Shown here: piece after piece, positions 21,715-62,300 of the stretch
Position numbering within the stretch: position 1 is the stretch's first letter
Layout: each line of letters begins with the position of its first letter
NCBI GenBank assembly: GCA_946965045.2
Contig: OX337240.1
Location: 3,038,001-3,102,000, forward strand
Origin: Epithemia pelagica
Taxonomy: Eukaryota > Protista > Bacillariophyta
Direction of reading: 5' to 3'
Length of the DNA: 64,000 nt
The notes under the pieces: generated by a model
What the model was told of the DNA's origin: nothing
The model's database searches: none
What the model saw: the letters and a program-made list of their open reading frames with translations, nothing else
Position numbers and translations under genes: made by a program

Positions 21715-21930
21715 ATGAGGACGGGTACAGAAGAGAGTAGGTACAATAAATGACTCTGACTATGAATCTGGAAGGGAAAGCCACGTACTCCAAATCTCCA
21801 AAGTCTACTACCATAGTATTTTTGACTTTTCGAAAGCATTTTATTACAGGTGGAGAGAGCACTGAAATGCGCACCATTCCTTCCTTCCTCTTATTCTTCT
21901 TCTTCTTCCTCCTCCTTCCTGCTACTTAGC

Positions 21931-23631
21931 ATGGCATCTTCTTCTTCTTCCTCCTCCTCCTCCATCATGGCATCTTCTTCTTCTTTGTCGTCTTCCAAAA
22001 GATTCCGAACCACAACAAAAACAACCACAACAAGATTCCGCCCCAAACAGTTGTGGCTCTTGCTCATTCTGTTGGTCTGTGTAGGAAACGTATTGCTTTC
22101 CGTTCGCCAAATCCTTGGCTTGTTTCCACAAGAACAACAACAACAAGTGATGACCGTGGTGGGAGTTGTCTTGGAGGAGAAGGACAACCACCACCAAACC
22201 TCCAACCACAGTTGGATCCGCCAGAAACAAGACGAGGAGAATGGAACACTACCACCGCCCGCCCTCCAACAGTTCCCACTCCAAACCAGTCGTCCTCCTT
22301 TGGTTTCCAGTACCACTACAACAACAACAACTACTACTTCCACAACAAGGAAAACCATTGCCTTGCACTGTTTGCTGAATTCGCGCAATACCTTTTGCTA
22401 TGTCCATTTTCCACACACGTTGCAAGCCCTCAGTCAATGTTGGAGCTATTTTCAATCGCAAACACACGAAATTCTCCACGAGTTGGACCACCACCCACAA
22501 CAGCAGGATGGTGATGCTGTTGTTGTGGTTCCACGAATTACCACGGCGATTCATACCCATGGAATTCGGGGACGATTCCATTCCCTTAACACGGATTGGC
22601 GCGCCTCCTTGATGCAACTCATCATGACCCATGTCCGTTATGTCAATCATGCCAAACCCTCTACACTGCCCCGCCAACACCAGAGCAATCGCACCCATGA
22701 GACGCGCATCTTTCGTCCCAAGGCCGGAATCGAGGACCTCCAATTCTTTTGGAACTATTCTCATGTCCAAGCCTTGCACGAGAATTTGTACCAAACCGAA
22801 TTGTATCGCAACCAGACATTGGGTGGAACAGTAGTATCATCCAATACTACGGACGACCACAGCAACCAATCGGCAGATCCCCTTTGCATTGGATTGATAA
22901 ATCGCAAAACGGCACGACGAATTGTCAATATGGACCAATTGGAACGAGCCATTCGACAGGAATATCCTCAAGCCCTGGTCCAAGTCGTGACCATGGAAGG
23001 CATGACACCTTTACAACAATATATTTGGTGGAATCAACAATCCATTGTTGTCACGCCTCATGGGGCTGCCACAACCAATCTCATTTTTATGAAACCCGGA
23101 TCGGCCGTCTTGGAACTCTATCAACCACATTATTATTGGTGGGGATTTTGGAAATTGGCCCAAACGGCGCAGGTGCGCTATTATGCCCAGTTTCCCATTC
23201 TCCTTCCCAACGCCACCGCCCGCCATCACAGCAGCAATCACAGCCACACCCATCACACGACAACCACCACCTCCCAGCAGCAGGCGGCCGAAGTGGCACT
23301 TTTTCAAGACTTTGTCGAAACTTGCAGCGATTGGCCATGGCAACGACAACAACAAAAACTTGCAGTCTTGGAACCCTCCATTCCTCATGTGATGGTCTTG
23401 TTGCGACGGGCCGTGACGGACTGGCAACAACAACAAACACAGACAACGAGCAGTACAAGTGCCCCTCCACAACCACAAATTGTGCGCATGGAAACCAGTT
23501 GTCAGCGAGCACAGTCCTTTTACCAGCAACACAAAAATGACAACCATCTTCCGGAACAGATTCAGACACGGGTCCAACTAAGCCTTGAGGAGGATCCCCC
23601 GCAAACCCTCCTGGACCAGTATGGTGGATGA
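21931..23631 (+). CDS. Glycosyltransferase family 61 (DUF563-type), type II membrane protein, copy A, about 566 aa
   Basis: N-terminal TM LWLLLILLVCVGNVLLSV; GT61 core LINRKTARRIVN...VVTMEGMTPLQQ...IVVTPHGAATTNLIFMKPGSAVLELY (HGAxxTN-x-FM-x-PGS-x-V-x-E pattern). Confidence 0.85.
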   Translation: MASSSSSSSSSIMASSSSLSSSKRFRTTTKTTTTRFRPKQLWLLLILLVCVGNVLLSVRQILGLFPQEQQQQVMTVVGVVLEEKDNHHQTSNHSWIRQKQDEENGTLPPPALQQFPLQTSRPPLVSSTTTTTTTTTSTTRKTIALHCLLNSRNTFCYVHFPHTLQALSQCWSYFQSQTHEILHELDHHPQQQDGDAVVVVPRITTAIHTHGIRGRFHSLNTDWRASLMQLIMTHVRYVNHAKPSTLPRQHQSNRTHETRIFRPKAGIEDLQFFWNYSHVQALHENLYQTELYRNQTLGGTVVSSNTTDDHSNQSADPLCIGLINRKTARRIVNMDQLERAIRQEYPQALVQVVTMEGMTPLQQYIWWNQQSIVVTPHGAATTNLIFMKPGSAVLELYQPHYYWWGFWKLAQTAQVRYYAQFPILLPNATARHHSSNHSHTHHTTTTTSQQQAAEVALFQDFVETCSDWPWQRQQQKLAVLEPSIPHVMVLLRRAVTDWQQQQTQTTSSTSAPPQPQIVRMETSCQRAQSFYQQHKNDNHLPEQIQTRVQLSLEEDPPQTLLDQYGG

Positions 23632-23706: not shown

Positions 23707-24329
23707 ACTCGAAAGAAGGGATCCTGGTATCCATTCCGCTTCGAGTAGCACGAAACAATATAGGAAGGAACGAAGCGAAAACCGCTTTCGTGGCACAGAA
23801 CGCGAAAACCTCTCCCTGTTGCACAGAACGCGAAAACCTCTTCCTGTGGCACAGGACTATAAAGTACCTACTAGATAGTCTCGCCTCTCTGTTTTTGTTT
23901 GTTTCTTTGTTTCTGGTGGTCGCCACGGATCGTCCCTGGAATGGAGTGACCTGTAGGTCGAGTCGCTATATGCCATTGACGTCTGAGCTAACATACTCGC
24001 AGGAATAGTAGGTAGGTAGTTGGATCATGAGACTCTTCCTGGCGAGAGAACGGGGTACGTTTGGCTCTACTAGCTAGAGAGGGCATGCGGTATACCAGAA
24101 GACGACGGATAGCCATGATCGCAAAGGTACAGCTGAAACCCAAAAATTTTGCAAGTTTTGTTCCAAGTTCCGTTCAAATTTCGGAGGCAAGAACCATGTG
24201 AAGGATGAGTGTTCCCCTTTTGGTGGTATGAATCTGTTTATACTATAGAGGAGAATCAATCACCGCAGAACACCACCCGACAAACAACCACAGAGTCTCT
24301 GGGGATCATCCTGCAACCACCACCCGTGA

Positions 24330-24480
24330 CCTTGGCAGCCGTGTGGCTGATGGTCCTTGTCACGGACACTTGCAAATGCCTCGGTCCTCGGTCCAAATCC
24401 ATTGCCGACCATGTGGCCGAACATGACATATGTCCATGTGGTGCACGGTGTGGGACCCGTCCAAGAAACGGGTATCCGTC
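24330..24480 (+). pseudogene. TIMP-like gene, 5' remnant with a large internal deletion (copy A)
   Basis: VLVTDTCKC...SIADHVAE matches the intact copy at 42526-43275. After GAAACGGGTA (about 24474) the sequence jumps to DNA equivalent to about 36295 of copy B, about 0.7 kb missing. Confidence 0.75.
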
Positions 24481-25437
24481 GGGGAACAACAAGACATACC
24501 AAACTATTTATGGGTAGTAGAGTATCATAAACCATTGGTTGAATTTTGTGGTCCAGCACCACCACCCATTGCCAACAACATCTTGGAGTCGTCCGCCCAA
24601 GAATCATCCACATTCGATGCTCGAACTGTCGGCACACGAGTACAAACACTCTCTCTCTATTTATACGAGTACATGGTGGATGGTCCTTTCCTCCTGGCTG
24701 GGCATGCCATAACCAATCGAGGTCGGTCCTGCGGTTCGCGGTCACGCATTTCCAGCAGAGATTTTCGGTTGCGCTACCTTTGGTAGTCTGGGATGGGACT
24801 CTCTTTTCTCTGCACGGATCACTGATCACTAGGAGTACTTTTATCCTTTCTCATTTGTTTGTTTCATATTATTGGTCACGCCCAGTGTCATTCATTATTT
24901 TTTGCTCCACACATACAGCAGCCTTGCAAACTGTCGGATGGCAATGACAATAATGACGACTCTGGAACGGTGCGAAAGAGTGCAATGCTATTATTAGTAT
25001 CGATGACCCCAATCCGAAGCACACCCCAAAACGGAAGGTTCGCGCTGTCAGAGGACACCTATATCCGTGTAGTAGTCTGGAACAAAAAGGAGAGACCATG
25101 GCAACAAGATCGGTGCTCGACCTAGTTACTACTCCTAGCCACAATAGGCATTTTCATCATGGTAGCACAGGTAGGCTTTTCTCCAACGGATGCGCATACC
25201 TCTTGTAGCTCCTGCAGAGACCTCTCCAGCGCATACCTACTCTAGCTCTAGAGAGCTCCATACCCCCAAGCGCCGGGTGAGTTTGAATCCCGCCTGAGTC
25301 GGAGAAAATATGCATTCGTGTTCTCACCCCCATGGCGCGTCCTCCAAATTTGGCGATTTCTCGATGTTGATACAAAATCATTTGCACCTCAACGCTTTCA
25401 CCGCGGACCCAAACTTGTGATACCAAGTGCATCCACC

Positions 25438-27627
25438 ATGGACCCTTCCAACCCATTCCAACGCTTTACACAGGAAACCAACACAATCGAAGAGTTATCT
25501 ACGGCGTCGCTGGTGCCTACACCGAACCACTTGGTGTCCACAGCCAACGTTCTATCTGCCCTCCGTCACCACAGCAACGAGGCCAGTGATGACCATGCAA
25601 CAAACTCCCAAGACACTTCTATTCGACCCGTCCGACCCGATTTCCCTTCCCCTCCCAATACCCCTTATGCATTACCCCTACTCGAGCAGGCCATCTTGCT
25701 GTCCTTTACTGACTGGCATGACAAAACTGCAAGACCATGGCAAGTGAACGCTTGCGGAGAAGTGATTAAGCGCCACACCATGCAACCTACGTCCTTTCCC
25801 ATCCTACGTCCTGTCCTTCTTGTCCGCTCCACCGGCGGTGGCAAGTCGGCCGTGAGAGATGTATCCGGATTTCTTTGTGGAGGGATTTCCATAACCATTG
25901 TCCCTTTATTGAGTTTGGCGGCGGACCAGACTACGAAGCTGACCGACCTTGCTTCGTCCCAAGGCCTCAATCATCGCCTGCAAGTGTTCAACCTCGACGT
26001 AATCCGTTCTCCGAAATTGAACGATACTCTTCGGAACCATCTCGAGCAGTTCACAAGCGCAGATGCGTCAAAAAAACGCGTCTTTTTGTTCACTTCCCCA
26101 CAAAAAATTACCACCAATCCACCATGGCAGGAAACTATATCGCGATGTTGTCACAATGGCACACTACGATTGATTGGGATAGATGAATGCCATCTCTATG
26201 CTTCTCACGGCATGGAATTCAGAGCCGAATTCGGGGCGTTGCGAAAGTGTCTATTCAAGATCGTTACACGACAATCAAAGATCCCCATACCAGTGCTATT
26301 TATGACGGCTACTGCATCGTCTGCAATGGTTGAGGACTTACAAACGCTGACTGGGTTGAGGTTCGATGTCACCCAAGACCTTCTTTGGCCCCATCGTCAC
26401 TCAGGCGTCCATCGCCGCAATATTTATCTTGAATTGTCCTTCAAGGATACTGCACTTCGACGGATCAAGGCAGAACTTGTAAAAACATGCCGGTCTACAA
26501 CAGGCCAGAAGATGATTGTGTATTCAAACTCAAGGAAGGCAATCCTGAATCTGCACAAGAACTGTCGTGCGGAACTCAACCGCCTCGGGATTCAAAAGGA
26601 CTTACTGTTGGTCCACGGAACAATGTTCAGAGAACAAAAGTTCCACCACACAGACCTTTTCGTGGGGAAACCACTGTCGGACGAATGTCCCACAACGGGA
26701 CGTACCTTGCGATTTGACCCTGTAGCCCTGTTTGCCACAGCAGGAACCGCGAGTTCTGGAATTGACTGTGCCGATGTGCATAAAGTCATTTTCCATGGTA
26801 TCCCTACAAGCCTACAAGACCTACTGCAATGTTCCGGTCGTTGTGGCCGGAGTCCCACAGCGACTCCGGACAATTCATCCTTCACTATTGTATTTTCCTT
26901 CAACAGTCTCGTTTCCCTCATGACGAGAATTTTCATTATCCCTAAGTATGAAGAATCGCAAAAGAAGAGCAAATCTCAGACAAGCACAACAAACAATTCC
27001 GAAGACAGTGACAAGAACAGTCTCGACTCCAAGCCTTCCGCCACAATCTCTCTGTCAGCCGACACACTTGCCATGCGCCACTGGAACAACCTTTTGCCTG
27101 TCCTTTCTGTGCTGTGTTTGAATCATGGCGGTTGCATTCATTACCAGCTCGAACAGGCCATGCTTCATCCCTTTCATGAAAAGAAATGCGACATGGCCTT
27201 TTGCTGCGATGGTGCTTGTTGGCGATGCAGCAGTGACAATCGTCGTGTTTCAACTCCACTTGATGGCCGAGTGGACAAAGGTGCTTTACAGGATTACTTC
27301 GTGCAGATTTTTATCACCAGGAAACTTTCACCAGCAAAGCTTTCCTTGCATAAGGAGTGCTTCCTAAACGAAATGCTACAATTCGCAACAGTTGGATCTG
27401 ATGGTAAAGAATCCAAACTCTTTGCGAAAAGGGTTTTCCGTTTGAAGGACAAGCGAGCGGCACGACAGCGTGCCAAAGCATTACTCTTGAAATGTTTTGC
27501 ATCTCAGATCCTTGAGCCTGAGATTGACGGCTTACAACTACGAGCTAAGCTTGGATACTATGAGAATGGAAACCCGAGGATGAACTGTGACGAGGCTTGG
27601 GCCGGCTTCAATTTATTCTCTTTCTAA
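25438..27627 (+). CDS. RecQ-like superfamily 2 helicase of the transposon, about 729 aa
   Basis: RPWQ; Walker A STGGGKS; Ia VPLLSLAADQ; FTSPQKI; motif II IDECHL; RecQ aromatic-loop-like GMEFRAEFGAL; III MTATA; IV IVYSNSR; V ATAGTASSGIDCADV; VI QCSGRCGR; C-terminal Cys cluster CIHY...CDMAFCCDGACWRC. The ORF-track start at 25318 overlaps the TIR, so ATG 25438 is preferred. Confidence 0.9.
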   Translation: MDPSNPFQRFTQETNTIEELSTASLVPTPNHLVSTANVLSALRHHSNEASDDHATNSQDTSIRPVRPDFPSPPNTPYALPLLEQAILLSFTDWHDKTARPWQVNACGEVIKRHTMQPTSFPILRPVLLVRSTGGGKSAVRDVSGFLCGGISITIVPLLSLAADQTTKLTDLASSQGLNHRLQVFNLDVIRSPKLNDTLRNHLEQFTSADASKKRVFLFTSPQKITTNPPWQETISRCCHNGTLRLIGIDECHLYASHGMEFRAEFGALRKCLFKIVTRQSKIPIPVLFMTATASSAMVEDLQTLTGLRFDVTQDLLWPHRHSGVHRRNIYLELSFKDTALRRIKAELVKTCRSTTGQKMIVYSNSRKAILNLHKNCRAELNRLGIQKDLLLVHGTMFREQKFHHTDLFVGKPLSDECPTTGRTLRFDPVALFATAGTASSGIDCADVHKVIFHGIPTSLQDLLQCSGRCGRSPTATPDNSSFTIVFSFNSLVSLMTRIFIIPKYEESQKKSKSQTSTTNNSEDSDKNSLDSKPSATISLSADTLAMRHWNNLLPVLSVLCLNHGGCIHYQLEQAMLHPFHEKKCDMAFCCDGACWRCSSDNRRVSTPLDGRVDKGALQDYFVQIFITRKLSPAKLSLHKECFLNEMLQFATVGSDGKESKLFAKRVFRLKDKRAARQRAKALLLKCFASQILEPEIDGLQLRAKLGYYENGNPRMNCDEAWAGFNLFSF

Positions 27628-27654
27628 TGTTATTCCATATTGATAAACCTACTT

Positions 27655-30600
27655 TTATTCATTTCGGAAGCGTTCGAATGCAGCTAACGATCGCTCTAAC
27701 AAAGTATCCTGTTCGTTGTTGTCAGACGTAGTATCCAACCATCCCAAAGTCTCTCCATCATCCTCCATTTCTTCTAATCGTACGTAGAGCTTGTATCTCA
27801 GAAAGTGCTCCTCTCTCTCTTTTCGTTCAACATCTTTTCCTCGCGCCGTTATGACATTCTTTTCGGCAATTTCCTCTAGTGCTACGGCAACGACATCTTT
27901 GGAGGCGATCACATTCATGGGGACTACCTTCATGCCTTTCACTGCTGACTTCTCTATCAGTCCGTCGTCTTGGTCCTTTTCCACACTGTCAGCTCCTTCT
28001 TCATTGTCCTCCTCTTCTTGAGAGGCACTAGCATCCTCGGCATCCTCATCAACTTCATCACATCGGTTATCATCAACATCCTCTGTCTCATCCGTAGTTT
28101 CCGCCGCCTCCTCCTCAATGGCATCTTCAAGTTGCGTTTCCGGAATCTGTTCTTCGTCTTCTTCGAAGACAGTATCTTCTTGGCTATTACCCCATTCTTC
28201 ATCGTTGTCGTCCTCTTTGTCTGAAAAGACCTCCACACTTGGTTGAGTGCCGTAGCCCGATGTATCCTCCATCACTTCCACAACGGCAACTGTTTCGCCA
28301 ATGCTAAAGTAGGACCGGTCTCCCACGGACTCTTCTCCGTCTTGGTCTTTCATTGCGTTTTCCAGTTCTTCATCTTGGTCATTCATGGCCTTTTCCAGGT
28401 CAATCTCTTCGTCGTCCTCAGTCTCATCCACATCCATTTGGTCCCCCTCACGATTGTCGCCCGTTTCTTCCCCCACCCTAGCATTCTTGGCTTTCGAAAG
28501 GGGCCCCATCATGGCCTGAGCCTGGCATAACACATACTGGTGTGTGGTGTCTGCCTCAACCTTACCGTCGCCACCACACCGTCGAAGCTTTTTCTGAACC
28601 TTGAGCGTAGTCAAATCCAATGCTCTCCAAAAATGGTCTCGATCTATCACACTGGAACTGTCACGAGGAACCTCGTAACATTTTGCAAGGACCAGTAATT
28701 CGGTGACCAAAACCCTGTTCAGCTCACTCTTGGGATACGTTGTCCGCTTGTTCCGCTGGCCAGGATCTGCCAGCGCCTCTTCATTGTACTTCGCTATCTC
28801 GGCAGGGTCTCCTTCTTCCTTCACCCGTTCCGCAAGTTCCGACATCCCGTCGGCTCGACCACGAGTATAAAACTCGACAAAATGCTTAGCCCGCTGACAG
28901 GCAGTAAGCATTTGAGACACCTTAATAAACGAGGCTTCGGTTCCGAGATGGTTCATGCCCTTGAAAAAGGGCATGAGCCTCTCCATAATCTGGTCAAGGG
29001 CACTTTCCTTCTGGAAGGCGGATGCGACGCTGGCGGGTTTCTGTCGTTTAGTTCTGTTCAGTCTGAGTTGTTGTAGAACCAAAATAGGAATGCCGTGATA
29101 GTATAACTCCATGAGCCGGAGCTGCGTATTAAAGGAATTCCGTTTGTTTGTTGCGTAAAAGTAGGGCAAATACTCCACGACCATGGCCTCCATTGATATT
29201 GCATCTCCGTGCTGTTCTGCTTCGAGAAATCTCATGTACTTCTTCGTTATCAATAGGAAGTTACAGAGGTAACGTCGTAACCAATGGGGACTCTCGCGAA
29301 CCTCCCGGTTCAAGAAAGCGAGATAAGTCTTTGCAAGATACACGGCCAGATCCTCTCCGCCATTGCTGCCCTTCAGCAAGTCTTCAATCTTTACCTTCTT
29401 GACTGCATTACAAACGAATACGTCGAACATAAGTCGCTCAGTCTCTTCATAAACCAGTGCAACAAGACGGTGACATAGTCTGTAACTATTCGACACGTCG
29501 ATTGGGTCGAGACGCTTCCATTTCAACCTGTGTTGGAAGCACTGCAAGAACCCCCCATAGAATAGTCTGTATATAGATTCCAACATGTGAAATCGAACAT
29601 GGAGGTCTCCCGTAATAGGCACAACACGGTGGATCACTCGGCTTATTGCCATGGCTTGGCGATATGCCTGCCTGAAGGACACTGTTTTGGAATCAGTGAT
29701 CGCCATAACATCATCGAAAAATTGAAAGATTCGGTCAATCGACAAACCGTCACCAACAATAAAGAGCCATTTGTCGTTCCACGAAGCAGCAGGTTTGTAG
29801 ATCTTGTTGTGATCATCCCATTCGAGCAGACCATGGAGTGTCATAAAATCAAGGACAACACCGGACGCCCCGACCTTTGTGGTTTCGTCTAGCACAGATA
29901 CTGGTAGCATCAAAAGTTCAGCAACTGGGGGAAGGTGCCGCCATGTCCGAACAACTCTAGAGGCGAATTGCCGAGCCATGGTGAAAACGTTCGTATCACG
30001 CTTCTTTCTGAGCCGGTTCATAGAATAATTGATCATTTCCCGCTTAGGACATGCTGCAAATTGAATTGGCTGTAGTGTGTAGTCTAGTTCTTGTCCTTTC
30101 CGCCGTCGGATGGAAAGGTAACGTTTAATCGCACGCAATTCCGCACACCATGATACCATTTGCACGTAGCAACGGACTCGCGTTCCAGAAAAATCGAAGG
30201 GGTTTCCATCACGTTCAAGATCGGACTTGTAGGTGCCACGAAATAAGGAAGCAATAGTATCCACCAGAGATGCATGCCGATCGCTCCGATCACACTCGAA
30301 AGCCGGCATTTGATACGGAGCTGGAATATCCTGTTGGATGTAAGTTAGTGCAGGTCGAGAAAGACAGGAATAGACCCATGAAGGTAGCTTCTCAAGATAC
30401 ATAGCCATGACGAACCTGGCTGTCACTCTCGTGTAGATTGCACTCTGTCCACTTTGGAACTGTAGGCGACGGCCGTCTTGTAGGTTATCAAATACGGCAA
30501 GAAGATTTGTTACGTTTCTCAATGACCTTTGGACCTTCTGGTCATAGGTCTTGAGGCATTCTGCAACACGGCGCTCCATCGTTCGCTTTGATACGGAAAT

Positions 30601-32919
30601 TCCAAACCAGATTGGAATCTGAAGGGCCAGCATTCCATGCCCACAAGCATATTGGGCCAAGGCAAAGAGCATGCCGAAGGGGACCAGTAGATGATTGTTG
30701 TGCTTTCTAGCCCGGACGATAAATTGGAAGAAAGCATCAAGGGAGTAGCGTTTGCGAAGAAAGCGTTTATCTGTTGCTGGGGCATCGTCTATCTTCTTCA
30801 GGTATCCACTCATCCCCATTATGGCGTTGAATTGTTGTGGAAGCTGGTGTTCAAATTGTGTCGTCAGTGCGCGCAACTCGTACTCCGAAAGAAATTTATC
30901 GAAAATATTGTTGAATCGGCCAAAGCATTCGTCGAGTCTTTCGTTCAATCTCTCATCTAATTTTTCGCAGAACTTGGCAACAACAGCAGCATCAATGATA
31001 GGAGGAGGCACCAATGCTTGCGACAAGGCTTGTTTCTGAACAGCAGCTATCTTGTTTTCGAATTGGGCTTTTGTCTCTGACGCATCCTGTTGGGCTTGGC
31101 AGCGTTCCCACACACTCTTCAATTCAGCCATCATGTACCTGTCCCCTGTGCTTTCCTGGATGAGGCGATGAAACAGTGTAACGCGATCATCGCCTTGTGC
31201 TTTCAACTGCTTGAACAAGGGCAACCAAGTCCGCTCTGGATGATAGTCTGCCTGTAAAAATACACCTTGGGGATAGGTGTACAACTCGAACCATGAGATA
31301 AGCTGTTGGATACACGCTTGGGGCGGAAAGGAAATATTGCAGTCTATTGCTGAGAAAATAGGAAAGCGTAGGTAGAGTCCATTGTGATTGAACTCGGACA
31401 AGGCTTCCATAACTTGGTCGTAGGTTTTCACACCCTCCTCTGTGATTTTCTTCTTAGTTGCTTGATTACTCTGGACCCACCCAGACAATTGTTTGTAAGA
31501 GCGGCCTTGACAAGAAACAGTCGGAAGGAATTGAGACTGTTCCGTTTCTCGCCAAAGAGTCAACAACCGTTTCCCGTAACGTGGTGGGAGGAGCGCTTCG
31601 TCAAAGAACAGAACGATCGCGGTTTCCTCTTCTATGAACCAGATATCCTCAAGTAATAGAGTCCGCAATGCAAAAGACGTCACAACATGTATTTGATTGT
31701 TTTGTTGGTTGGAATCTGGCGAATTGGTTTCGGACGGTGCAACTGAATCGCTTCGTTTCCGTTTGGTGGAGGATAAACGGTTATAGCGACGCTGTTTCTT
31801 GGTTCCAGTGGTTGACCGAGATACGCCGGCGGTGAAGTTTTTGGCTTTTCGCATCAATTGGGAACAATGGTTGGAGGATAGGGAAAGAGCCTGAGGATTT
31901 TCGGCTTCTGGAGCAACTATAACCAAAGGCGGATGGAGCTTGCTGGATTGCCCGGGGTTTTGACAATGGAGCGGGGGTTGTCGACGCAGAGGAAGCAAGT
32001 ACGTCCCTTCGACAATCTGTTTAACTGGGACTTTCAGATTTGGGTATTTGGCTTGTTGTGGTTGTGGACGACGGACACGTCCTTGCAACAAAGGTGCAGA
32101 GGTTCCGGTAGGCGGTTGGTTGTTGTTGAGCGGAGATTCGGCAGGAGGAGCAACGGCCGTAGGAACGGTGTACTCAGATGCAATCTCGTGGTTGTTGTTT
32201 GTTGTGGTATGATCGTCGTTGTCGTTGTAGTTGTTCGTTGCTGTAGGATCACTGTTGTTGTTGTTGCTCGTGGTAGGATTGATGTTGTTGGTTTCTTGCT
32301 GCTGGTTTGGTGTCTCAACCACTCGCGACATATTCAGAGGCTTCGGTGGTGAAGATTGAGTGCCAAACTCGACGTGTCCAAAGGAATGACGACGGTGAAC
32401 CAGATCGAAGGACTGTGAAGAGGCACCTCTGTTGTTTGGTAGAACAGTAACAGTCCGACGAACGTCAGGGGAAGACCCAGCACTGGGAGTACCTTGGGAC
32501 GATATAGGAAAAGAGGTAAAAGGAAGGCGATGAGGCGCTGGTTGGGTGCGCTCCGATGGGATCGTCGAGAGCGAACTTGCAGCGGCACTGTCAAGGAAGC
32601 CTGAGGGTTCGGACTTTTCTTCGTTTGCTTCGACCTGTCTTGCTGCATTACCATTTGTCGCGAGAGGAGTTTCGTAGGGAGGAAGGGACGAGGTGGTAAC
32701 ATGGACAGATGAAGGAAAAGGGAACGGGTTGGAAGGAGAAGTGGCTGGAGGATGCTGCACTTGAATCTGTTCTTGTGAAGCGTTTCGACTTTCGGCGATA
32801 GTCCTTGTTCTACCCTCTTGTGTCGACGCTTGTGATGCTCCCGATACATCTTGCGCTGCAAAAGCCTTCCTGGCTTGCTTCTGAGAGAGGCGGTGCTTTC
32901 GGTGGGAAGATGTAGACAT
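27655..32919 (-). CDS. Academ-type (DUF6589-like) putative transposase, 1754 aa
   Basis: Motifs AVFDNLQ, FIVGDGLSIDR, PITGDLHVRFHMLESIYRLFYGG and SALDQIMERL match my recollection of the Academ/DUF6589 DN...GD...GxFH...DxxxE pattern. Disordered N-terminus and a very acidic tail. Lies inside the TIR/TSD-bounded unit. Confidence 0.75.
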   Translation of the reverse strand: MSTSSHRKHRLSQKQARKAFAAQDVSGASQASTQEGRTRTIAESRNASQEQIQVQHPPATSPSNPFPFPSSVHVTTSSLPPYETPLATNGNAARQVEANEEKSEPSGFLDSAAASSLSTIPSERTQPAPHRLPFTSFPISSQGTPSAGSSPDVRRTVTVLPNNRGASSQSFDLVHRRHSFGHVEFGTQSSPPKPLNMSRVVETPNQQQETNNINPTTSNNNNSDPTATNNYNDNDDHTTTNNNHEIASEYTVPTAVAPPAESPLNNNQPPTGTSAPLLQGRVRRPQPQQAKYPNLKVPVKQIVEGTYLLPLRRQPPLHCQNPGQSSKLHPPLVIVAPEAENPQALSLSSNHCSQLMRKAKNFTAGVSRSTTGTKKQRRYNRLSSTKRKRSDSVAPSETNSPDSNQQNNQIHVVTSFALRTLLLEDIWFIEEETAIVLFFDEALLPPRYGKRLLTLWRETEQSQFLPTVSCQGRSYKQLSGWVQSNQATKKKITEEGVKTYDQVMEALSEFNHNGLYLRFPIFSAIDCNISFPPQACIQQLISWFELYTYPQGVFLQADYHPERTWLPLFKQLKAQGDDRVTLFHRLIQESTGDRYMMAELKSVWERCQAQQDASETKAQFENKIAAVQKQALSQALVPPPIIDAAVVAKFCEKLDERLNERLDECFGRFNNIFDKFLSEYELRALTTQFEHQLPQQFNAIMGMSGYLKKIDDAPATDKRFLRKRYSLDAFFQFIVRARKHNNHLLVPFGMLFALAQYACGHGMLALQIPIWFGISVSKRTMERRVAECLKTYDQKVQRSLRNVTNLLAVFDNLQDGRRLQFQSGQSAIYTRVTARFVMAMYLEKLPSWVYSCLSRPALTYIQQDIPAPYQMPAFECDRSDRHASLVDTIASLFRGTYKSDLERDGNPFDFSGTRVRCYVQMVSWCAELRAIKRYLSIRRRKGQELDYTLQPIQFAACPKREMINYSMNRLRKKRDTNVFTMARQFASRVVRTWRHLPPVAELLMLPVSVLDETTKVGASGVVLDFMTLHGLLEWDDHNKIYKPAASWNDKWLFIVGDGLSIDRIFQFFDDVMAITDSKTVSFRQAYRQAMAISRVIHRVVPITGDLHVRFHMLESIYRLFYGGFLQCFQHRLKWKRLDPIDVSNSYRLCHRLVALVYEETERLMFDVFVCNAVKKVKIEDLLKGSNGGEDLAVYLAKTYLAFLNREVRESPHWLRRYLCNFLLITKKYMRFLEAEQHGDAISMEAMVVEYLPYFYATNKRNSFNTQLRLMELYYHGIPILVLQQLRLNRTKRQKPASVASAFQKESALDQIMERLMPFFKGMNHLGTEASFIKVSQMLTACQRAKHFVEFYTRGRADGMSELAERVKEEGDPAEIAKYNEEALADPGQRNKRTTYPKSELNRVLVTELLVLAKCYEVPRDSSSVIDRDHFWRALDLTTLKVQKKLRRCGGDGKVEADTTHQYVLCQAQAMMGPLSKAKNARVGEETGDNREGDQMDVDETEDDEEIDLEKAMNDQDEELENAMKDQDGEESVGDRSYFSIGETVAVVEVMEDTSGYGTQPSVEVFSDKEDDNDEEWGNSQEDTVFEEDEEQIPETQLEDAIEEEAAETTDETEDVDDNRCDEVDEDAEDASASQEEEDNEEGADSVEKDQDDGLIEKSAVKGMKVVPMNVIASKDVVAVALEEIAEKNVITARGKDVERKEREEHFLRYKLYVRLEEMEDDGETLGWLDTTSDNNEQDTLLERSLAAFERFRNE

Positions 32920-33406
32920 GGATAAGGTCTTTCACAGACACCGTACCTCTGCCACCGTAATGAATGTGTGGAGATAATATGTGTGTTTTGGGATTTTGTA
33001 TCAACATCGAGAGCTCCAGGACGCGCCATGGGGGTGAGTATACGAAAGCCCTTTTTAAGTGCGACTCAATACTCGCCCGGCGCTTGGGGGTAGAGAGCTC
33101 CAGCCGAGATGAGCTGTTGCGGGACCGAGACTACAATAAGAGCACAGATCAAAGAAACGGGGACACACGTAATTGAATTGGCGGAGGATGAAACAATAAT
33201 GACAGGCGCGGAACTACACTACAATCTACAATCCATCGGCTCGAGGGACGTGATTGAATTATTTGGCGCAACCGCACTCTCTAGCCACGCTCGCATTTCG
33301 TAGTCTGTTTTCGTAAAAAATGAGACGCCACGAACTCGCGCGCTCCAAAGAGGCAACAAACCATTGGACATCTCTCTCTCTCTCGCTCTCTCACTCATCC
33401 TCCATC

Positions 33407-35110
33407 ATGGCATCTTCTTCTTCCTCCTCTTCTTCTTCTTTCAGCAGCAGATTCAGGAGTACCAAAATGACGACTCCGACAACAACCACAACAACCACAA
33501 CAACAACAACAACCACAAGATTCCTCCGCCCCCGCACTCCCTGGCTCTATGCAGTGGGTGCTCTCGCCATCAATTCCGTTCGCCTCATGTTTGGCGTGTT
33601 GGCTCAGCAGCAACGACAAGAACAAGAACAAGAACAAGAACAAGAACAACGAGTTACTTTGGCATTCATGGACGACCACCCAACCAACAGCAACCACTAC
33701 AGTTGGATCCGCCCGAAACAAGAAGAGGAGAATGGAACACTACCACCACCACCGCCCGGCCTCCCACAATCCACCAAGGATGGAACCAACCCTTGGGTTC
33801 CGAGTACCATCCACAATACAACAACTACAACCACATCATCTACCACAAGGAACAACACCATTGCCTTGCACTGCTTGTTGGATTCACGCAATACCTTTTG
33901 TTATGTGCATTTTCCACACACGCTGCAAGCTCTGAGTCAATGTTGGAGCTACTTTCAATCGCAAACACGACAAATTCTCGAGCAGCACTCCAAGGATGCG
34001 GCGATTCTTCCACGAATTACCACCACGATTCACAGTCATGGCATTCGAGGTCGATTCCAGTCCCCCCAGTCGGATTGGCGTGCCGCCTTTGTGCAGTTCC
34101 TACTCGCCAATGTCACGACCTTGCATCATGCCCGACGGTCCACCCTGCCCCACCCCAACAACAACGACAATCGCACGCATTCCACGCGCATCTTTCGACC
34201 CACGCCCGACGATTCCGGACTGGATGGGTTGCGATTCTTTTGGAATTACTCCCATGTCCAAGCCTTGCACGACAATCTGTATCAAACCGAATTGTATCGT
34301 CGCCACCAGACAACCACCTCCTTGGGCGAAACAGTCGGACGATCCGACAAGCAGTCTGTTTCCCAACCGCCACGACTCCGCATTGCAGTGATTAACCGGA
34401 ACGCGACACGACGGATTGTCAATATAAATCAATTGGAACGAGCCATTCGACAGGAATATCCTCAGGCCCTGGTCCAAGTCGTGACCATGGAAGGCATGAC
34501 GCCACTGCAACAATATATTTGGTGGAATCAACAATCGATTGTGGTGACACCTCATGGGGCTGCCACGACCAATCTGATTTTCATGAAACCCGGATCGGCC
34601 GTCTTGGAACTCTATCAACCGCATTATTATTGGTGGGGATTTTGGAAATTGGCCCAAACCGCCCGCGTTCGGTATTATGCCCAGTTTCCAATCCTCCTTC
34701 CCAACGCCACCCCCCGCAATCACAGCAGCCACCATCACACTCACCACACGACAACGACCAAGCAGCAGGCGGCCGAACTGGCGCTCTTTCAAGACTTTTG
34801 CGAAACTTGTAGCGATTGGCCATGGCAACGACACCAACAAAAACTTGCAGTCTTGGAACCCTCCATTCCTCATGTGATGGTCTTGTTGCGACGGGCCGTG
34901 ACGGACTGGCAAGAACAAGGACGGACAAGGAGCAGTACGACGACTGTCACTCCACAAATTGTGCGCATGGAAACCAATTGTCAGCGAGCACAGTCCTTTT
35001 ACCAGCAGCACCACAATGACAACAATCTTCCGGAACAGATTCAGACACGGGTCCAACTAAGCCTCGACGACGATCCCCCGCAATCCCTCCTGGACCAGTA
35101 CGGTGAATGA
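33407..35110 (+). CDS. Glycosyltransferase family 61, copy B, about 567 aa
   Basis: Near-identical catalytic half to copy A (VVTMEGMTPLQQYIWWNQQSIVVTPHGAATTNLIFMKPGSAVLELYQPHYYWWGFWKLAQTA); N-terminal hydrophobic segment WLYAVGALAINSVRLMFGVLA. Confidence 0.85.
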   Translation: MASSSSSSSSSFSSRFRSTKMTTPTTTTTTTTTTTTTRFLRPRTPWLYAVGALAINSVRLMFGVLAQQQRQEQEQEQEQEQRVTLAFMDDHPTNSNHYSWIRPKQEEENGTLPPPPPGLPQSTKDGTNPWVPSTIHNTTTTTTSSTTRNNTIALHCLLDSRNTFCYVHFPHTLQALSQCWSYFQSQTRQILEQHSKDAAILPRITTTIHSHGIRGRFQSPQSDWRAAFVQFLLANVTTLHHARRSTLPHPNNNDNRTHSTRIFRPTPDDSGLDGLRFFWNYSHVQALHDNLYQTELYRRHQTTTSLGETVGRSDKQSVSQPPRLRIAVINRNATRRIVNINQLERAIRQEYPQALVQVVTMEGMTPLQQYIWWNQQSIVVTPHGAATTNLIFMKPGSAVLELYQPHYYWWGFWKLAQTARVRYYAQFPILLPNATPRNHSSHHHTHHTTTTKQQAAELALFQDFCETCSDWPWQRHQQKLAVLEPSIPHVMVLLRRAVTDWQEQGRTRSSTTTVTPQIVRMETNCQRAQSFYQQHHNDNNLPEQIQTRVQLSLDDDPPQSLLDQYGE

Positions 35111-59362: not shown

Positions 59363-62300
59363 TCACCCCTGTTGTTCGCTTTGTTCCCCCGTATCTGGAT
59401 GGGTGGTGGGGGGCCCCGCATTTCCGAAGGCTGAAGAGTATGTAAATTGCGATATCAAGTCATTGCGCCGAGAACGCGGCAACAACTTGGTGAATAAGTC
59501 GGCGAGATTAGTTTCGGTGTCTTCCTTCCCGACTCGAATAATACCAGCAGCAGCCGCTTCCCGCACAGCGTGGTAATTTATTGCGTTGTGTTTCTTGTTC
59601 AATACAGAAGATGGGACGCTAGTGTTCTTCACCACACCGCGGTTGTCACAAAGAACGTTCGAGGCCCCGACAATTGGTACGCCAAACATCCGAAGCTTGT
59701 ACCTCATCCCAACAATCAACTCTTTGGCAATGCGCATTGCCACAAATTCACTGCCGAAGCTCGAAGTTTCCACCGTGTTCTGACGTTTGGAGAACCACAG
59801 GATCGGTGCATTTTGCATCATGATCAAGATTCCCGAGTGGGACCGCCTGGTGACGACGTTGCCAGCATGGTCAGCGTCCACGAAACACGTGATCGTAGCC
59901 GGATTCCCCAGTGGCTCGGGCATGTCCGTTGGAATCTGTTCCGCTACGTCCCCGTAGAACTCCTTCCATTCATCCATCGGTGCCTGCGAAAAACATGCCT
60001 CGTCCAGTATCACCTCCTTCGGATCGAACACGAGTTTGAGTTTGGCATGCTTCTTGAGGAACGCAAAGATCGAGTATACCACCTCGAGGTGACCCTTGCG
60101 GGGATTTGCCAGATATTGAGACATGATAGCTACCTCGAGGTATACATCGACGCGTCCGAGCTCCACAGCCCACCGTAATATGCCAATCAGCTGCTGATAC
60201 CTTGCCCTCAGTGTTTCTCCCAACTCCTCTGTCGCATCCAATTCCGGTTTGTACGATGTCTCGATTGGCACTCGGGCGGTCGTCTTGAGGTGCCGGCCGT
60301 CCCCGTCTTCCTTGAGCAATTGTTCGACTATCTTTATTGCATTGTTCACGTACTTTTCGCTCGACATACCCCAGGCACTACTACCGTCTGGTAGGTTGTG
60401 ACGATAAACCTGCGCGCCCAAGTATGTTGATGGTGGACCAATGCTTCCCTTCTTGATCTTATAAAGCTTGTCTATCTCCTCGAATAACGGCTCTGGTTTG
60501 TCGCTGACCAATAGTAGGTCATCCACGTAGACCAAGATAAGCTCGTAGTAAGGCTCACCACTTGCCCGTTGCTTCTTTCTCCTTAATACGCAAGGGTCTG
60601 CCCTGGTATCGACAAATCCCATGTCATATAGCGTATTCAATAGTGTTGCGCGCCAACTCGCTCCGGACGATTTCAGTCCATATAATGCCCGGACCATACC
60701 ACATACTTTGCCCTGAAACTCTGCACCGACTTCTGCTCCCCCCAAAAACCAAATCTTTTCCCGACATGGTGCGTTTAAGTACGCATTCCCGATGTCACAA
60801 GCCAACACATCTAGGTCATTCAACGCTGCGATCAGAAACGCCACACGGATTGAGTCCCGGCTTACGACGCTGGAGTATGTTAAACTTGCCGGTGCATCCG
60901 TCATGTGCCCACCGGCAACTAGTCTAGCTTTCCGTGTCAAGTCCATCTTGACGTCGAACACCATGTGGCATTTGATCTCGGTGTAGCCTATCAACTGTCG
61001 CCCCGCTCGCACCTCCGCGAGCACGAGGTCGTCCCGTGCCTCCCACGCAATCTTGACGACGCCTAGCTCCTTTGCGATCGCGTCACGCCAGAATGTCGTA
61101 CCCGTTTCCTTGTCCAGTTGCAGAGCCTCTTCGACGGAATGGGGCAGTCGCACCCCGTATTTGTGCGTTAACTTCCAGTATTTTTTCTGTTTCTTCTTTT
61201 TCCCGACCACTTTATTTATTATCCGTCTTTTGTGGTTCATAACCTGTGGCACCCACGAATGAAACGCTGGCTCTTGCTCCAACCCTTGTGCTATTATATA
61301 CTCCGCAACCTCTATCGGGTAGCCATCCTTTGCTTCTCGCAGCGGTATCCAGGACTGTGATCCGTCCTTCCATTCGATTGCCAGTTCCCAACCTTTCGTC
61401 GTCCTTTTTGGTACTTGGTTTCCATTCTTGGACACAACGAACCCGTCTTCTCTATCCACGGCGTCCCCGTTTTTCCTGTGTCCCACGATCTCTTTCATGA
61501 TGGCAAACTGTCTCCCTTGGTCATCTATCTGCGAGTACAGAGACTCGGCTATTACGTTCGCCGTGTACTCGTGCACCACACCGCCTGGGAAGCTCACCTC
61601 GTAAGCTCTGTCGTCGAATATTGGATTTTTGTGCTTCGTACCAATCGGTTTTCCGTCTAACCCTTTCTTCCTTTTTACCACGGTTCCAAGAAGCTTCTCC
61701 CCTCCCACGTCCAATTGAATTTGAGCTCCCAGGTAGTTGTCATACTCTTCCTCCAGGTCTTCCACGTCAGGTTTTTCCTCTTGAATCATCTTTCCATATT
61801 CCTCGTCCGTTGGAACGACACCCTTTTGAACATGATCTTCGGGCAATGGCTGCAAATCTTCGAGGAACCCTGGCCCCATGCTTTCCCAATCCGTAAAATT
61901 TCGATCGTCCAGTCTATCCTCAACAATCATCCTAAATTCCCGAATTCTTTCTGCCATCCGCGGCTCGGCCTGTTCCTCTGCCGTTACATGTTGCACAGAA
62001 GTTCTGGCCAAGACCTTGCCAGACTTGGTAAGCACCCAATAAGTCGCTCCCGATCCTGTGCGCGATTCCCAACCAAAAGCCCAGGTGCCTCTGTACCTCC
62101 GCCGTATCCGCTTTGGAGTTGTCGTGGTACCAAACGAGGTCGAAAAAGGAGAAGTCGAGCCACTCCGATATATCTGGTGTGTCACCAGTGAGTCGCTCCA
62201 AACCGGAACGGTTGTCCTGTCCCCGTGCGACGCGACTGAGAATGCCAGATTCATGGGCGAGACCGTAGTGCCAAAGACGGCGTGGAACCCGACAATCAAC

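Follow-up and report, generated by a model that had tools for sequence, protein, structure and literature searches.

We analyzed a stretch of 64,000 nucleotides from the genome of the diatom Epithemia pelagica (GCA_946965045.2, contig OX337240.1, positions 3,038,001 to 3,102,000 of the forward strand), hereafter called the window, and focus here on an element of 7,832 bp at window positions 25261-33092 that is bounded by terminal inverted repeats (TIRs) and carries two convergent intact genes, one for a RecQ-like superfamily 2 (SF2) helicase and one for a long putative transposase. We are confident that it is an intact autonomous class II (TIR) DNA transposon of the AcademH type in a diatom. 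A preliminary description of the locus had listed perfect 17-bp TIRs, a perfect 10-bp target-site duplication (TSD), and two uninterrupted convergent open reading frames (ORFs) with stop codons 27 bp apart, and all of these were found as described: The TIRs match at 17 of 17 and then 21 of 22 positions, the TSD GAGAGCTCCA is exact at both ends, and the ORFs span 25318-27627 (plus strand) and 27655-32919 (minus strand). The features of the element are, in order:

25251-25260, no strand: left TSD copy, 10 bp GAGAGCTCCA; an empty-site allele with one copy is present in runs X1-X3
25261-25282, plus strand: left TIR, on the helicase side, TACCCCCAAGCGCCGGGTGAGT
25305-25379, plus strand: left subterminal blocks, ..TCTCACCCCCATGGCGCGTCC.. 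and TCTCGATGTTGATACAAAATC, mirrored at the right end and upstream of the helicase ATG
25438-27627, plus strand: RecQ-like SF2 helicase gene, 729 aa from the first ATG at 25438, in an uninterrupted ORF that is open from 25318
27628-27654, no strand: spacer of 27 bp between the convergent stop codons
27655-32919, minus strand: transposase gene, an uninterrupted ORF of 1,754 aa
28840-30522, minus strand: predicted RNase H-like DDE core with all-alpha insertion domain (AlphaFold2 [AF2] model, invariant columns, codons checked)
30487-30489, 29749-29751, and 28981-28983, minus strand: candidate triad D811, D1057, and E1313 (conserved columns and AF2 model)
32992-33056, minus strand: right subterminal blocks, the mirror of 25305-25379, upstream of the transposase ATG
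33071-33092, minus strand: right TIR, on the transposase side, compared as reverse complement with the left end
33093-33102, no strand: right TSD copy, 10 bp GAGAGCTCCA, an exact match to the left copy

Termini of the element

The left end of the element reads TACCCCCAAGCGCCGGG followed by T and then GAGT, and the 17 nucleotides of TACCCCCAAGCGCCGGG are perfect at both element ends on opposite strands. This 17-mer is found at the 2 element ends only in the 64-kb window, where 0.14 occurrences would be expected at up to 3 mismatches. With the TIRs taken as symmetric, the TSD measures 10 bp and the element termini are TA..TA, and a 12-bp direct repeat is the alternative reading owing to the terminal TA of the right TIR. 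Just inside the TIRs lie two inverted pairs of subterminal blocks (25305-25343 with 33018-33056 and 25359-25379 with 32992-33012). Each terminus is thus a mirror-image extension of around 120 bp, and each gene begins around 175 bp in from its terminus. Both blocks are kept at both ends in all 4 subfamilies compared (see below) and are candidate transposase-binding and/or promoter sequences.

The helicase gene

By sequence and predicted fold, the helicase is a divergent RecQ-like SF2 enzyme, in agreement with the preliminary description. It carries a Walker A motif GGGKS (25834-25848) and a DECH box of the DEAH type (26182-26193), matches the Pfam domains DEAD and Helicase_C, and finds its best sequence match in the PDB in RecQ1 (E 2.6e-11). 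An AF2 model built on 22 relatives (pLDDT 82.8) was compared with the PDB using Foldseek, and the top 42 matches were all catalytic cores of the RecQ family, with E values down to 2e-18 and alignments of around 640 columns. Four invariant cysteines (566/590/594/597) are found at the position of the RecQ zinc site. The score against the RecQ family model TIGR00614 recQ_fam is 81.7 bits and thus far under the cut-off of 219.8, no HRDC or RQC domain was matched in Pfam, and the clade of element helicases stands well apart from true RecQ/BLM.

The transposase gene and its predicted DDE core

The transposase consists of a conserved N-terminal region (around aa 250-780), the DDE core (around aa 800-1360), an acidic tail with 36% D+E in aa 1471-1700, and a conserved C-terminal motif that is also kept in metagenome contig L005. 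The motifs noticed in the preliminary description lie at D811-N812 (VFDNLQ), G1056-D1057 (VGDGLS), G1104-D-L-H1107, and D1309..E1313 (ALDQIMERL). In an alignment of relatives, D1057 and the GDLH motif at aa 1104-1107 are invariant, E1313 is almost invariant, and the consensus has D811 conserved.

The large protein had further been called Academ/DUF6589-like, and we found this likeness in sequence and structure databases alike. Pfam DUF6589 (PF20231) matches the whole transposase with 30.9 bits and the core alone with 34 bits at a cut-off of 27, and it is the sole Pfam match both in this protein and in 22 of 26 relatives. No XPG or further domain was found in the element proteins by the Pfam scan, no BED or THAP domain was detected in the transposase, and a search of NCBIfam with this protein gave nothing. 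Among the AFDB clusters, DUF6589 proteins match the transposase core at E 1e-11, and in the Atlas the closest clusters hold DUF6589 proteins from Basidiomycota, Cnidaria, and Mucoromycota, the very groups in which AcademH is reported (PMC10799480, citing Kojima 2020).

Modeling of the core (AF2, aa 780-1400; pLDDT 85.1, pTM 0.84) predicts the RNase H-like order strand-strand-strand-helix-strand-helix-strand. In this model, D811 lies on the first strand (26-36), D1057 ends the fourth (272-277), and E1313 sits on helix 529-541, with an all-alpha insertion domain between the strand of D1057 and the helix of E1313. When the model was compared with 48,161 chains using VIA-align, the leading rows were all RNase H-fold enzymes: The hAT transposase Hermes and the P-element transposase came first (both Z 8.8, with 283-294 residues aligned), followed by retroviral integrase cores (Z around 7) and then ISCth4, Tn5, IstA, Sleeping Beauty, and RAG1. 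The model thus predicts an RNase H-fold DDE enzyme with D811, D1057, and E1313 as its candidate catalytic triad.

Copies in the same genome and selection on both genes

Other copies and their TSD lengths, which the preliminary description had named as a check, were found in the same assembly. One contig of this assembly carries the two proteins of the window. With the window's transposase counted, the assembly has at least 11 transposase paralogs (43-81% identical to that of the window), and its helicase paralogs, each inside an element, number at least 18 (53-83% identical to the window's). The family as a whole falls into 4 or more diverged subfamilies. Six further copies (L001, L002, L003, L004, L018, and L019) are full in the sense that they have the gene pair and both subterminal blocks at both ends:

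Window copy: 7,832 bp, TSD 10 bp GAGAGCTCCA
L001: 7,757 bp, TSD 10 bp CCGAGAAATT
L018: 7,771 bp, TSD 10 bp ATCCACCACG
L004: 7,805 bp, TSD 9 bp TTGGTTGCT
L019: 7,526 bp, TSD 9 bp TGAGTCCAT
L002 and L003: 7,809 bp each, TSDs 9 bp AATGGAGCG and 9 bp AGTGACCGG, swapped between the two loci

Across these 7 insertion sites, the length of the TSD goes with the subfamily, being 10 bp in that of the window (3 copies: window, L001, and L018) and 9 bp in the others. The TIRs are perfect over 17-25 bp in intact copies (window, L002/L003, and L004) and have shorter perfect runs in older ones. The terminal 11 nucleotides TACCCCCAAGC are unchanged in 4 of the copies, and L018 and L019 have one or two changes. 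The spacer of the convergent gene pair is similarly short elsewhere, with 19-33 bp in L001, L004, L005, L014, L018, and L019 and 62 bp in L002/L003. In its 90%-identity cluster within the assembly, the window copy stands alone; the full copies nearest to it are L001 (around 75% DNA identity) and L018 (81-84% amino acid identity).

Between subfamilies, DNA identity is only 65-75% and synonymous sites are saturated, but the ORFs are still open with around 590-770 and 1,340-1,750 codons. Between the window copy and L018, the helicase has a ratio of nonsynonymous to synonymous substitution rates (dN/dS) of 0.096 and the transposase one of 0.067. These sequence comparisons indicate strong purifying selection on both genes through the splitting of the subfamilies. 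Since dN/dS is low and the ORFs have stayed open despite saturated synonymous sites, both genes must have been needed during the whole history of the family.

Recent mobility

An empty site had been predicted for alleles that lack the element, and this prediction was borne out by Logan contigs from 4 runs of the same organism that we placed on window positions 24261-30260. In runs X1, X2, and X3, we found contigs in which the left flank is followed by TACTCTACTAGCTAGAGAGCTCCAGCCGAG, i.e., a junction reading ..TAGAGAGCTCCA and then GCCGAG.. in which a single GAGAGCTCCA leads straight into the right flank (33103 onward). These contigs carry a variant haplotype (T>G at 25070, C>T at 25140, and +AG at 25197) and have a depth of 113-133, equal to that of adjoining single-copy contigs. 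The 18-mer at the junction is unique in the window, and neither flank is duplicated. Another allele or sample of this organism therefore lacks the insertion studied here. Contigs from the inside of the element in X1-X3 differ from the window copy at around 3-11 positions per kb while the window site is empty, so these samples hold near-identical copies elsewhere.

The two full copies L002 and L003 show 0 differences over 7,809 bp in unrelated flanks. From the insertion polymorphism and these identical copies, we infer that the family is currently active. The earlier suggestion of a young, possibly active stramenopile member accordingly stands as far as the polymorphic insertion and the identical sister copies go. 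The window element is one member of an old and diversified stramenopile lineage rather than a lone arrival.

The depth of the Logan contigs varies along the element. In X2 and X3, contigs over its first 200 bp are around 8 times as deep as internal ones, and in X1, the first 1 kb shows a depth that is higher by a factor of 10-40. The excess at the terminus in X2 and X3 suggests additional copies of this terminus in the form of short derivatives or solo ends. One contig in X2 and X3 joins position 26038 to 27785 with 30 nucleotides on its shorter side and is possibly an internal-deletion derivative.

Relatives in other genomes and metagenomes

An exhaustive profile-free search with the transposase core gave 391 representative relatives, 171 of them with E <1e-10, and the close ones are all from this genome, Skeletonema, Pedinella, or marine metagenomes. 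They include KAK1743298.1 and KAK1733536.1 of Skeletonema marinoi, both labeled “hypothetical protein,” as well as an MMETSP transcript of Pedinella sp. CCMP2098, and another MMETSP transcript falls into the Skeletonema cluster. Relatives of the transposase are thus transcribed. Among 30 distant relatives whose clusters were looked up, names were obtained for Skeletonema marinoi and Pedinella only, a diatom and another ochrophyte. When alignment A3 was used as a profile to look for named relatives in fungi or animals, only paralogs from the same assembly came back.

Besides the Skeletonema locus L016, where it is convergent, the gene pair is found in the Logan contig L011 and in contigs L005 and L014/L015 of JGI metagenomes. 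Partner helicases in L011, L014, L016, and L005 are homologous over their whole length (E 1e-35 to 1e-44), whereas host RecQ/BLM proteins are far more distant (E around 1e-9). JGI labels helicase relatives as “superfamily II DNA helicase RecQ,” so that together with the Skeletonema marinoi proteins they show the very annotation that had been anticipated, a RecQ gene next to a hypothetical protein. No clean TIR/TSD boundaries were found in the Skeletonema loci or in L011/L012, where copies are degenerate or ended by contig ends.

In two marine metagenome scaffolds (L012 and L013, from ERZ17100596 and TARA_SAMEA2620583), the helicase gene lies downstream of the transposase gene on the same strand, i.e., in tandem and not convergent, and a small ORF of 110 aa is found between the two. 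The termini of L014:9636-16998 (CACACTGTAGTACTTCGGTT..) are similar to the ends of a degenerate copy in Skeletonema marinoi at L017:7618-13095 (CACGCTGTAGTCCTCGGTTT..), and the L014/L015 contigs may, judging from these ends, derive from a related diatom.

Other observations at the insertion sites

A further copy of the 10-mer GAGAGCTCCA lies inside the element at 33009-33018, 75-84 bp from the transposase-side end, where it overlaps a conserved subterminal block. The same 10-mer is found at the matching place in L001 (L001:6104-6113) and is therefore ancestral to the window's subfamily. The target of the window copy is the only one that resembles the element ends, and no such likeness was seen at the 6 other insertion sites. 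The match between target and internal 10-mer is either a coincidence of roughly 1 in 1,000 or a sign of an occasional preference for end-like targets.

The element is flanked by two paralogous GT61 glycosyltransferase genes on the plus strand (21850-23631 and 33320-35110). It is inserted 218 bp upstream of the ATG of the second and may affect the promoter of this gene. The nearest Atlas cluster of the flanking GT61 gene is mostly from Bacillariophyta. Near the end of the window, a copia-type reverse transcriptase ORF (RVT_2; 978 aa, 59363-62299, minus strand) is part of a retrotransposon.

The identical sister-subfamily copies L002 and L003 occupy L002:7829-15637 and L003:7829-15637 on ERZ21939226 contigs ctg1227l and ctg1351l, respectively. 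The left flank of L002 bears AATGGAGCG and its right flank AGTGACCGG, and L003 shows the reverse. This exchange of TSDs reflects either ectopic homologous recombination between the copies, an unresolved replicative cointegrate, or an assembly misjoin. As a speculation to which we give only slight credit, AcademH might sometimes move by a replicative copy-in pathway that needs its own RecQ-like helicase, and L002/L003 would then be an unresolved cointegrate in which two chromosome arms were fused in one event; neither later homologous recombination nor an assembly error would then account for the pair. The empty site at the window locus gives no choice between cut-and-paste and copy-in because it looks like any uninserted allele. 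The sequence on the left of L003 (L003:1-7498) is rich in transposons, with Ty1/copia-type (RVT_2) and Ty3-type (RVT_1-rve) elements and a piggyBac-like DDE_Tnp_1_7 gene beside the L003 copy.

Strength of the classification and alternative explanations

All AcademH features that we looked for are present, i.e., a DUF6589-type transposase, a separate DEAD + Helicase_C helicase within the element, TSDs of 9-10 bp, and TIRs. Several points nonetheless speak against assigning the element to AcademH as an active transposon. The assignment was made by transposase type, helicase, and TSD features from published descriptions, and we take DUF6589 to be the Academ transposase, with which the taxon range, the architecture, and the length of the TSDs agree. 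Fungal and animal DUF6589 proteins resemble the transposase only weakly in sequence (31-34 bits, with 10-14% identity when aligned by structure). The evidence for the predicted DDE fold consists of VIA-align Z scores of 7-9, a range graded middling by the makers of this program, and Foldseek gave no significant match of the transposase core to the PDB. The metagenomic relatives L014/L015 have a 25-bp TIR and a TSD of 8 bp (ACTTACTC). Logan contigs show presence and not absence, so that the heterozygous, strain-specific, and fixed states of the window insertion look the same in them, and neither a transcript nor an excision event was observed for this copy.

The weakness of the DUF6589 match could mean that the family is a separate, stramenopile-centered lineage of helicase-carrying DDE transposons that is sister to the described AcademH, with a helicase that was acquired independently or is older than the split of AcademH and AcademX. 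The DUF6589 model is mostly fungal and animal, the element's match to it reaches only 30.9-34 bits with 10-14% identity to AFDB DUF6589 proteins, close relatives come only from the sources named above, and the group is diverse given the tandem arrangement in a TARA lineage and the 8-bp TSD of L014/L015. But every AcademH feature that could be checked was found (an Academ-type transposase, a RecQ-like SF2 helicase, and 9-10-bp TSDs, with no XPG), and common descent is the simpler account of the shared helicase partner, so we consider such a separate lineage unlikely, if worth keeping in view. A different doubt concerns mobility, as the element could be intact yet immobile, its polymorphism an old segregating insertion and its ORFs kept for a host function by domestication. 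Such a history would fit the solitary position of the window copy in its 90%-identity cluster, with L001 and L018 as far diverged nearest full copies, and the absence of an observed transcript or excision. We nevertheless judge it improbable: The TSD is perfect, the TIRs match at 21 of 22 positions, and the subterminal blocks are intact; X1-X3 hold near-identical element sequence (around 3-11 differences per kb) while the window site is empty; and a sister subfamily has two 100% identical copies. Domesticated genes, moreover, lose their TIRs and turn single-copy and syntenic, whereas here 7 or more loci keep TIRs and TSDs.

The labels “RecQ” and “hypothetical protein” that pipelines give to relatives would suit yet another account, in which nothing here is mobile and inverted repeats that arose by chance enclose a host RecQ paralog together with an unrelated host gene. 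We give this account practically no credence. The 17-mer termini occur twice against 0.14 expected, the gene pair recurs together with termini and 9-10-bp TSDs at 6 other loci with unrelated flanks, and the helicase clade is well apart from true RecQ/BLM. The recurrence of TSDs and TIRs at other loci and the existence of the empty site refute it.

Proposed mechanism and significance

For the AcademH-type transposon that we favor, the following course of transposition can be proposed. The transposase would bind the terminal and subterminal blocks and cleave the element ends using D811, D1057, and E1313, and the ends would be joined to target DNA cut with a stagger of 9-10 nucleotides, with gap repair producing the TSD. 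The helicase would be an obligatory partner, and its most likely task is to unwind or remodel the DNA of the transposon ends or of the target while cleavage, strand transfer, or repair takes place. In the convergent layout, each extended terminus might double as the promoter of one gene.

The AcademH class of transposons, in which a DDE transposase always comes with a RecQ-like helicase, has been described, but its mechanism is untouched. The elements described here extend its host range to stramenopiles (the diatom studied here, Skeletonema marinoi, Pedinella, and marine metagenomes) and have kept the helicase under selection as strong as that on the transposase. The polymorphic insertion and the identical pair are candidate live copies for asking what this helicase does. 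For genome annotation, it matters that such genes are labeled as RecQ helicases or hypothetical proteins, which inflates counts of host repair genes. Extensions of the host range of transposon superfamilies are common, and nothing in our results contradicts known AcademH biology.

Comparison with known systems

Cellular RecQ helicases (RecQ1, BLM, WRN, and bacterial RecQ) share with the element helicase the fold of the catalytic core, the four-cysteine site, the C-terminal part, and the GGGKS and DECH motifs. The similarity amounts to around 25% identity (E around 1e-9), though, with TIGR00614 far under its cut-off and no HRDC/RQC, and the element helicase is multi-copy, lies inside TIRs, and co-diverges with the transposase. 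A cellular RecQ gene is ruled out by the TIGR00614 score (81.7 versus 219.8) and by at least 18 paralogs that each lie inside an element.

Helicases are also encoded by Helitron and KolobokH elements (PMC10799480, PMC9587614). Helitrons differ in having an HUH nuclease fused to a PIF1-type SF1 helicase without TIRs or TSDs, whereas the window element has a separate RecQ-like SF2 helicase and a DDE transposase; no Helitron_like_N or PIF1 match was found, and this together with the presence of TIRs and TSDs rules them out. KolobokH has a 4-bp TTAA TSD and 5'-RR..YY-3' termini (PMC9587614) and is ruled out by the 9-10-bp TSDs without TTAA and the TA..TA termini found here. The hAT family (Hermes) and the P element gave the best structural matches and share an RNase H-like DDE core with a large all-alpha insertion before the catalytic E as well as a His-containing motif just after beta5, which is GDLH here and C/DxxH there (PMC9587614). 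They show no detectable sequence similarity to the element, have TSDs of 8 bp rather than 9-10 bp, and neither encodes a helicase.

AcademX belongs to the same transposase superfamily but, according to the statements of PMC10045372 on this group, has an XPG nuclease and TSDs of 3-4 bp, whereas the window element has a helicase gene, no XPG, and TSDs of 9-10 bp. The missing XPG match and the length of the TSDs rule it out. PMC10045372 also gives TSDs of 9 or 10 bp for AcademH and 3 or 4 bp for AcademX and ties the difference to the helicase versus the nuclease. For AcademH, PMC10799480 names DEAD and Helicase_C as the domains of the helicase and, among fungi, lists hosts in Basidiomycota, Ascomycota, and Mucoromycota. 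The literature that we searched held no report of Academ in diatoms or other stramenopile hosts and only passing mentions of DUF6589/PF20231. Kojima 2020 (Mob DNA 11:15) reportedly confines the AcademH lineage to animals and fungi in its title. With AcademH, the window element shares an Academ/DUF6589-type DDE transposase and a separate RecQ-like SF2 helicase inside TIRs, TSDs of 9 or 10 bp, and a low to moderate copy number. It differs in its host, a diatom instead of animals and fungi, in its long transposase (1,754 aa) with an acidic tail, in its termini TACCCCCAAGC, and in the very low sequence similarity of its transposase to fungal and animal DUF6589 proteins. The AcademH kind of transposon is thus already known, and what is new is the host group, the stramenopiles.

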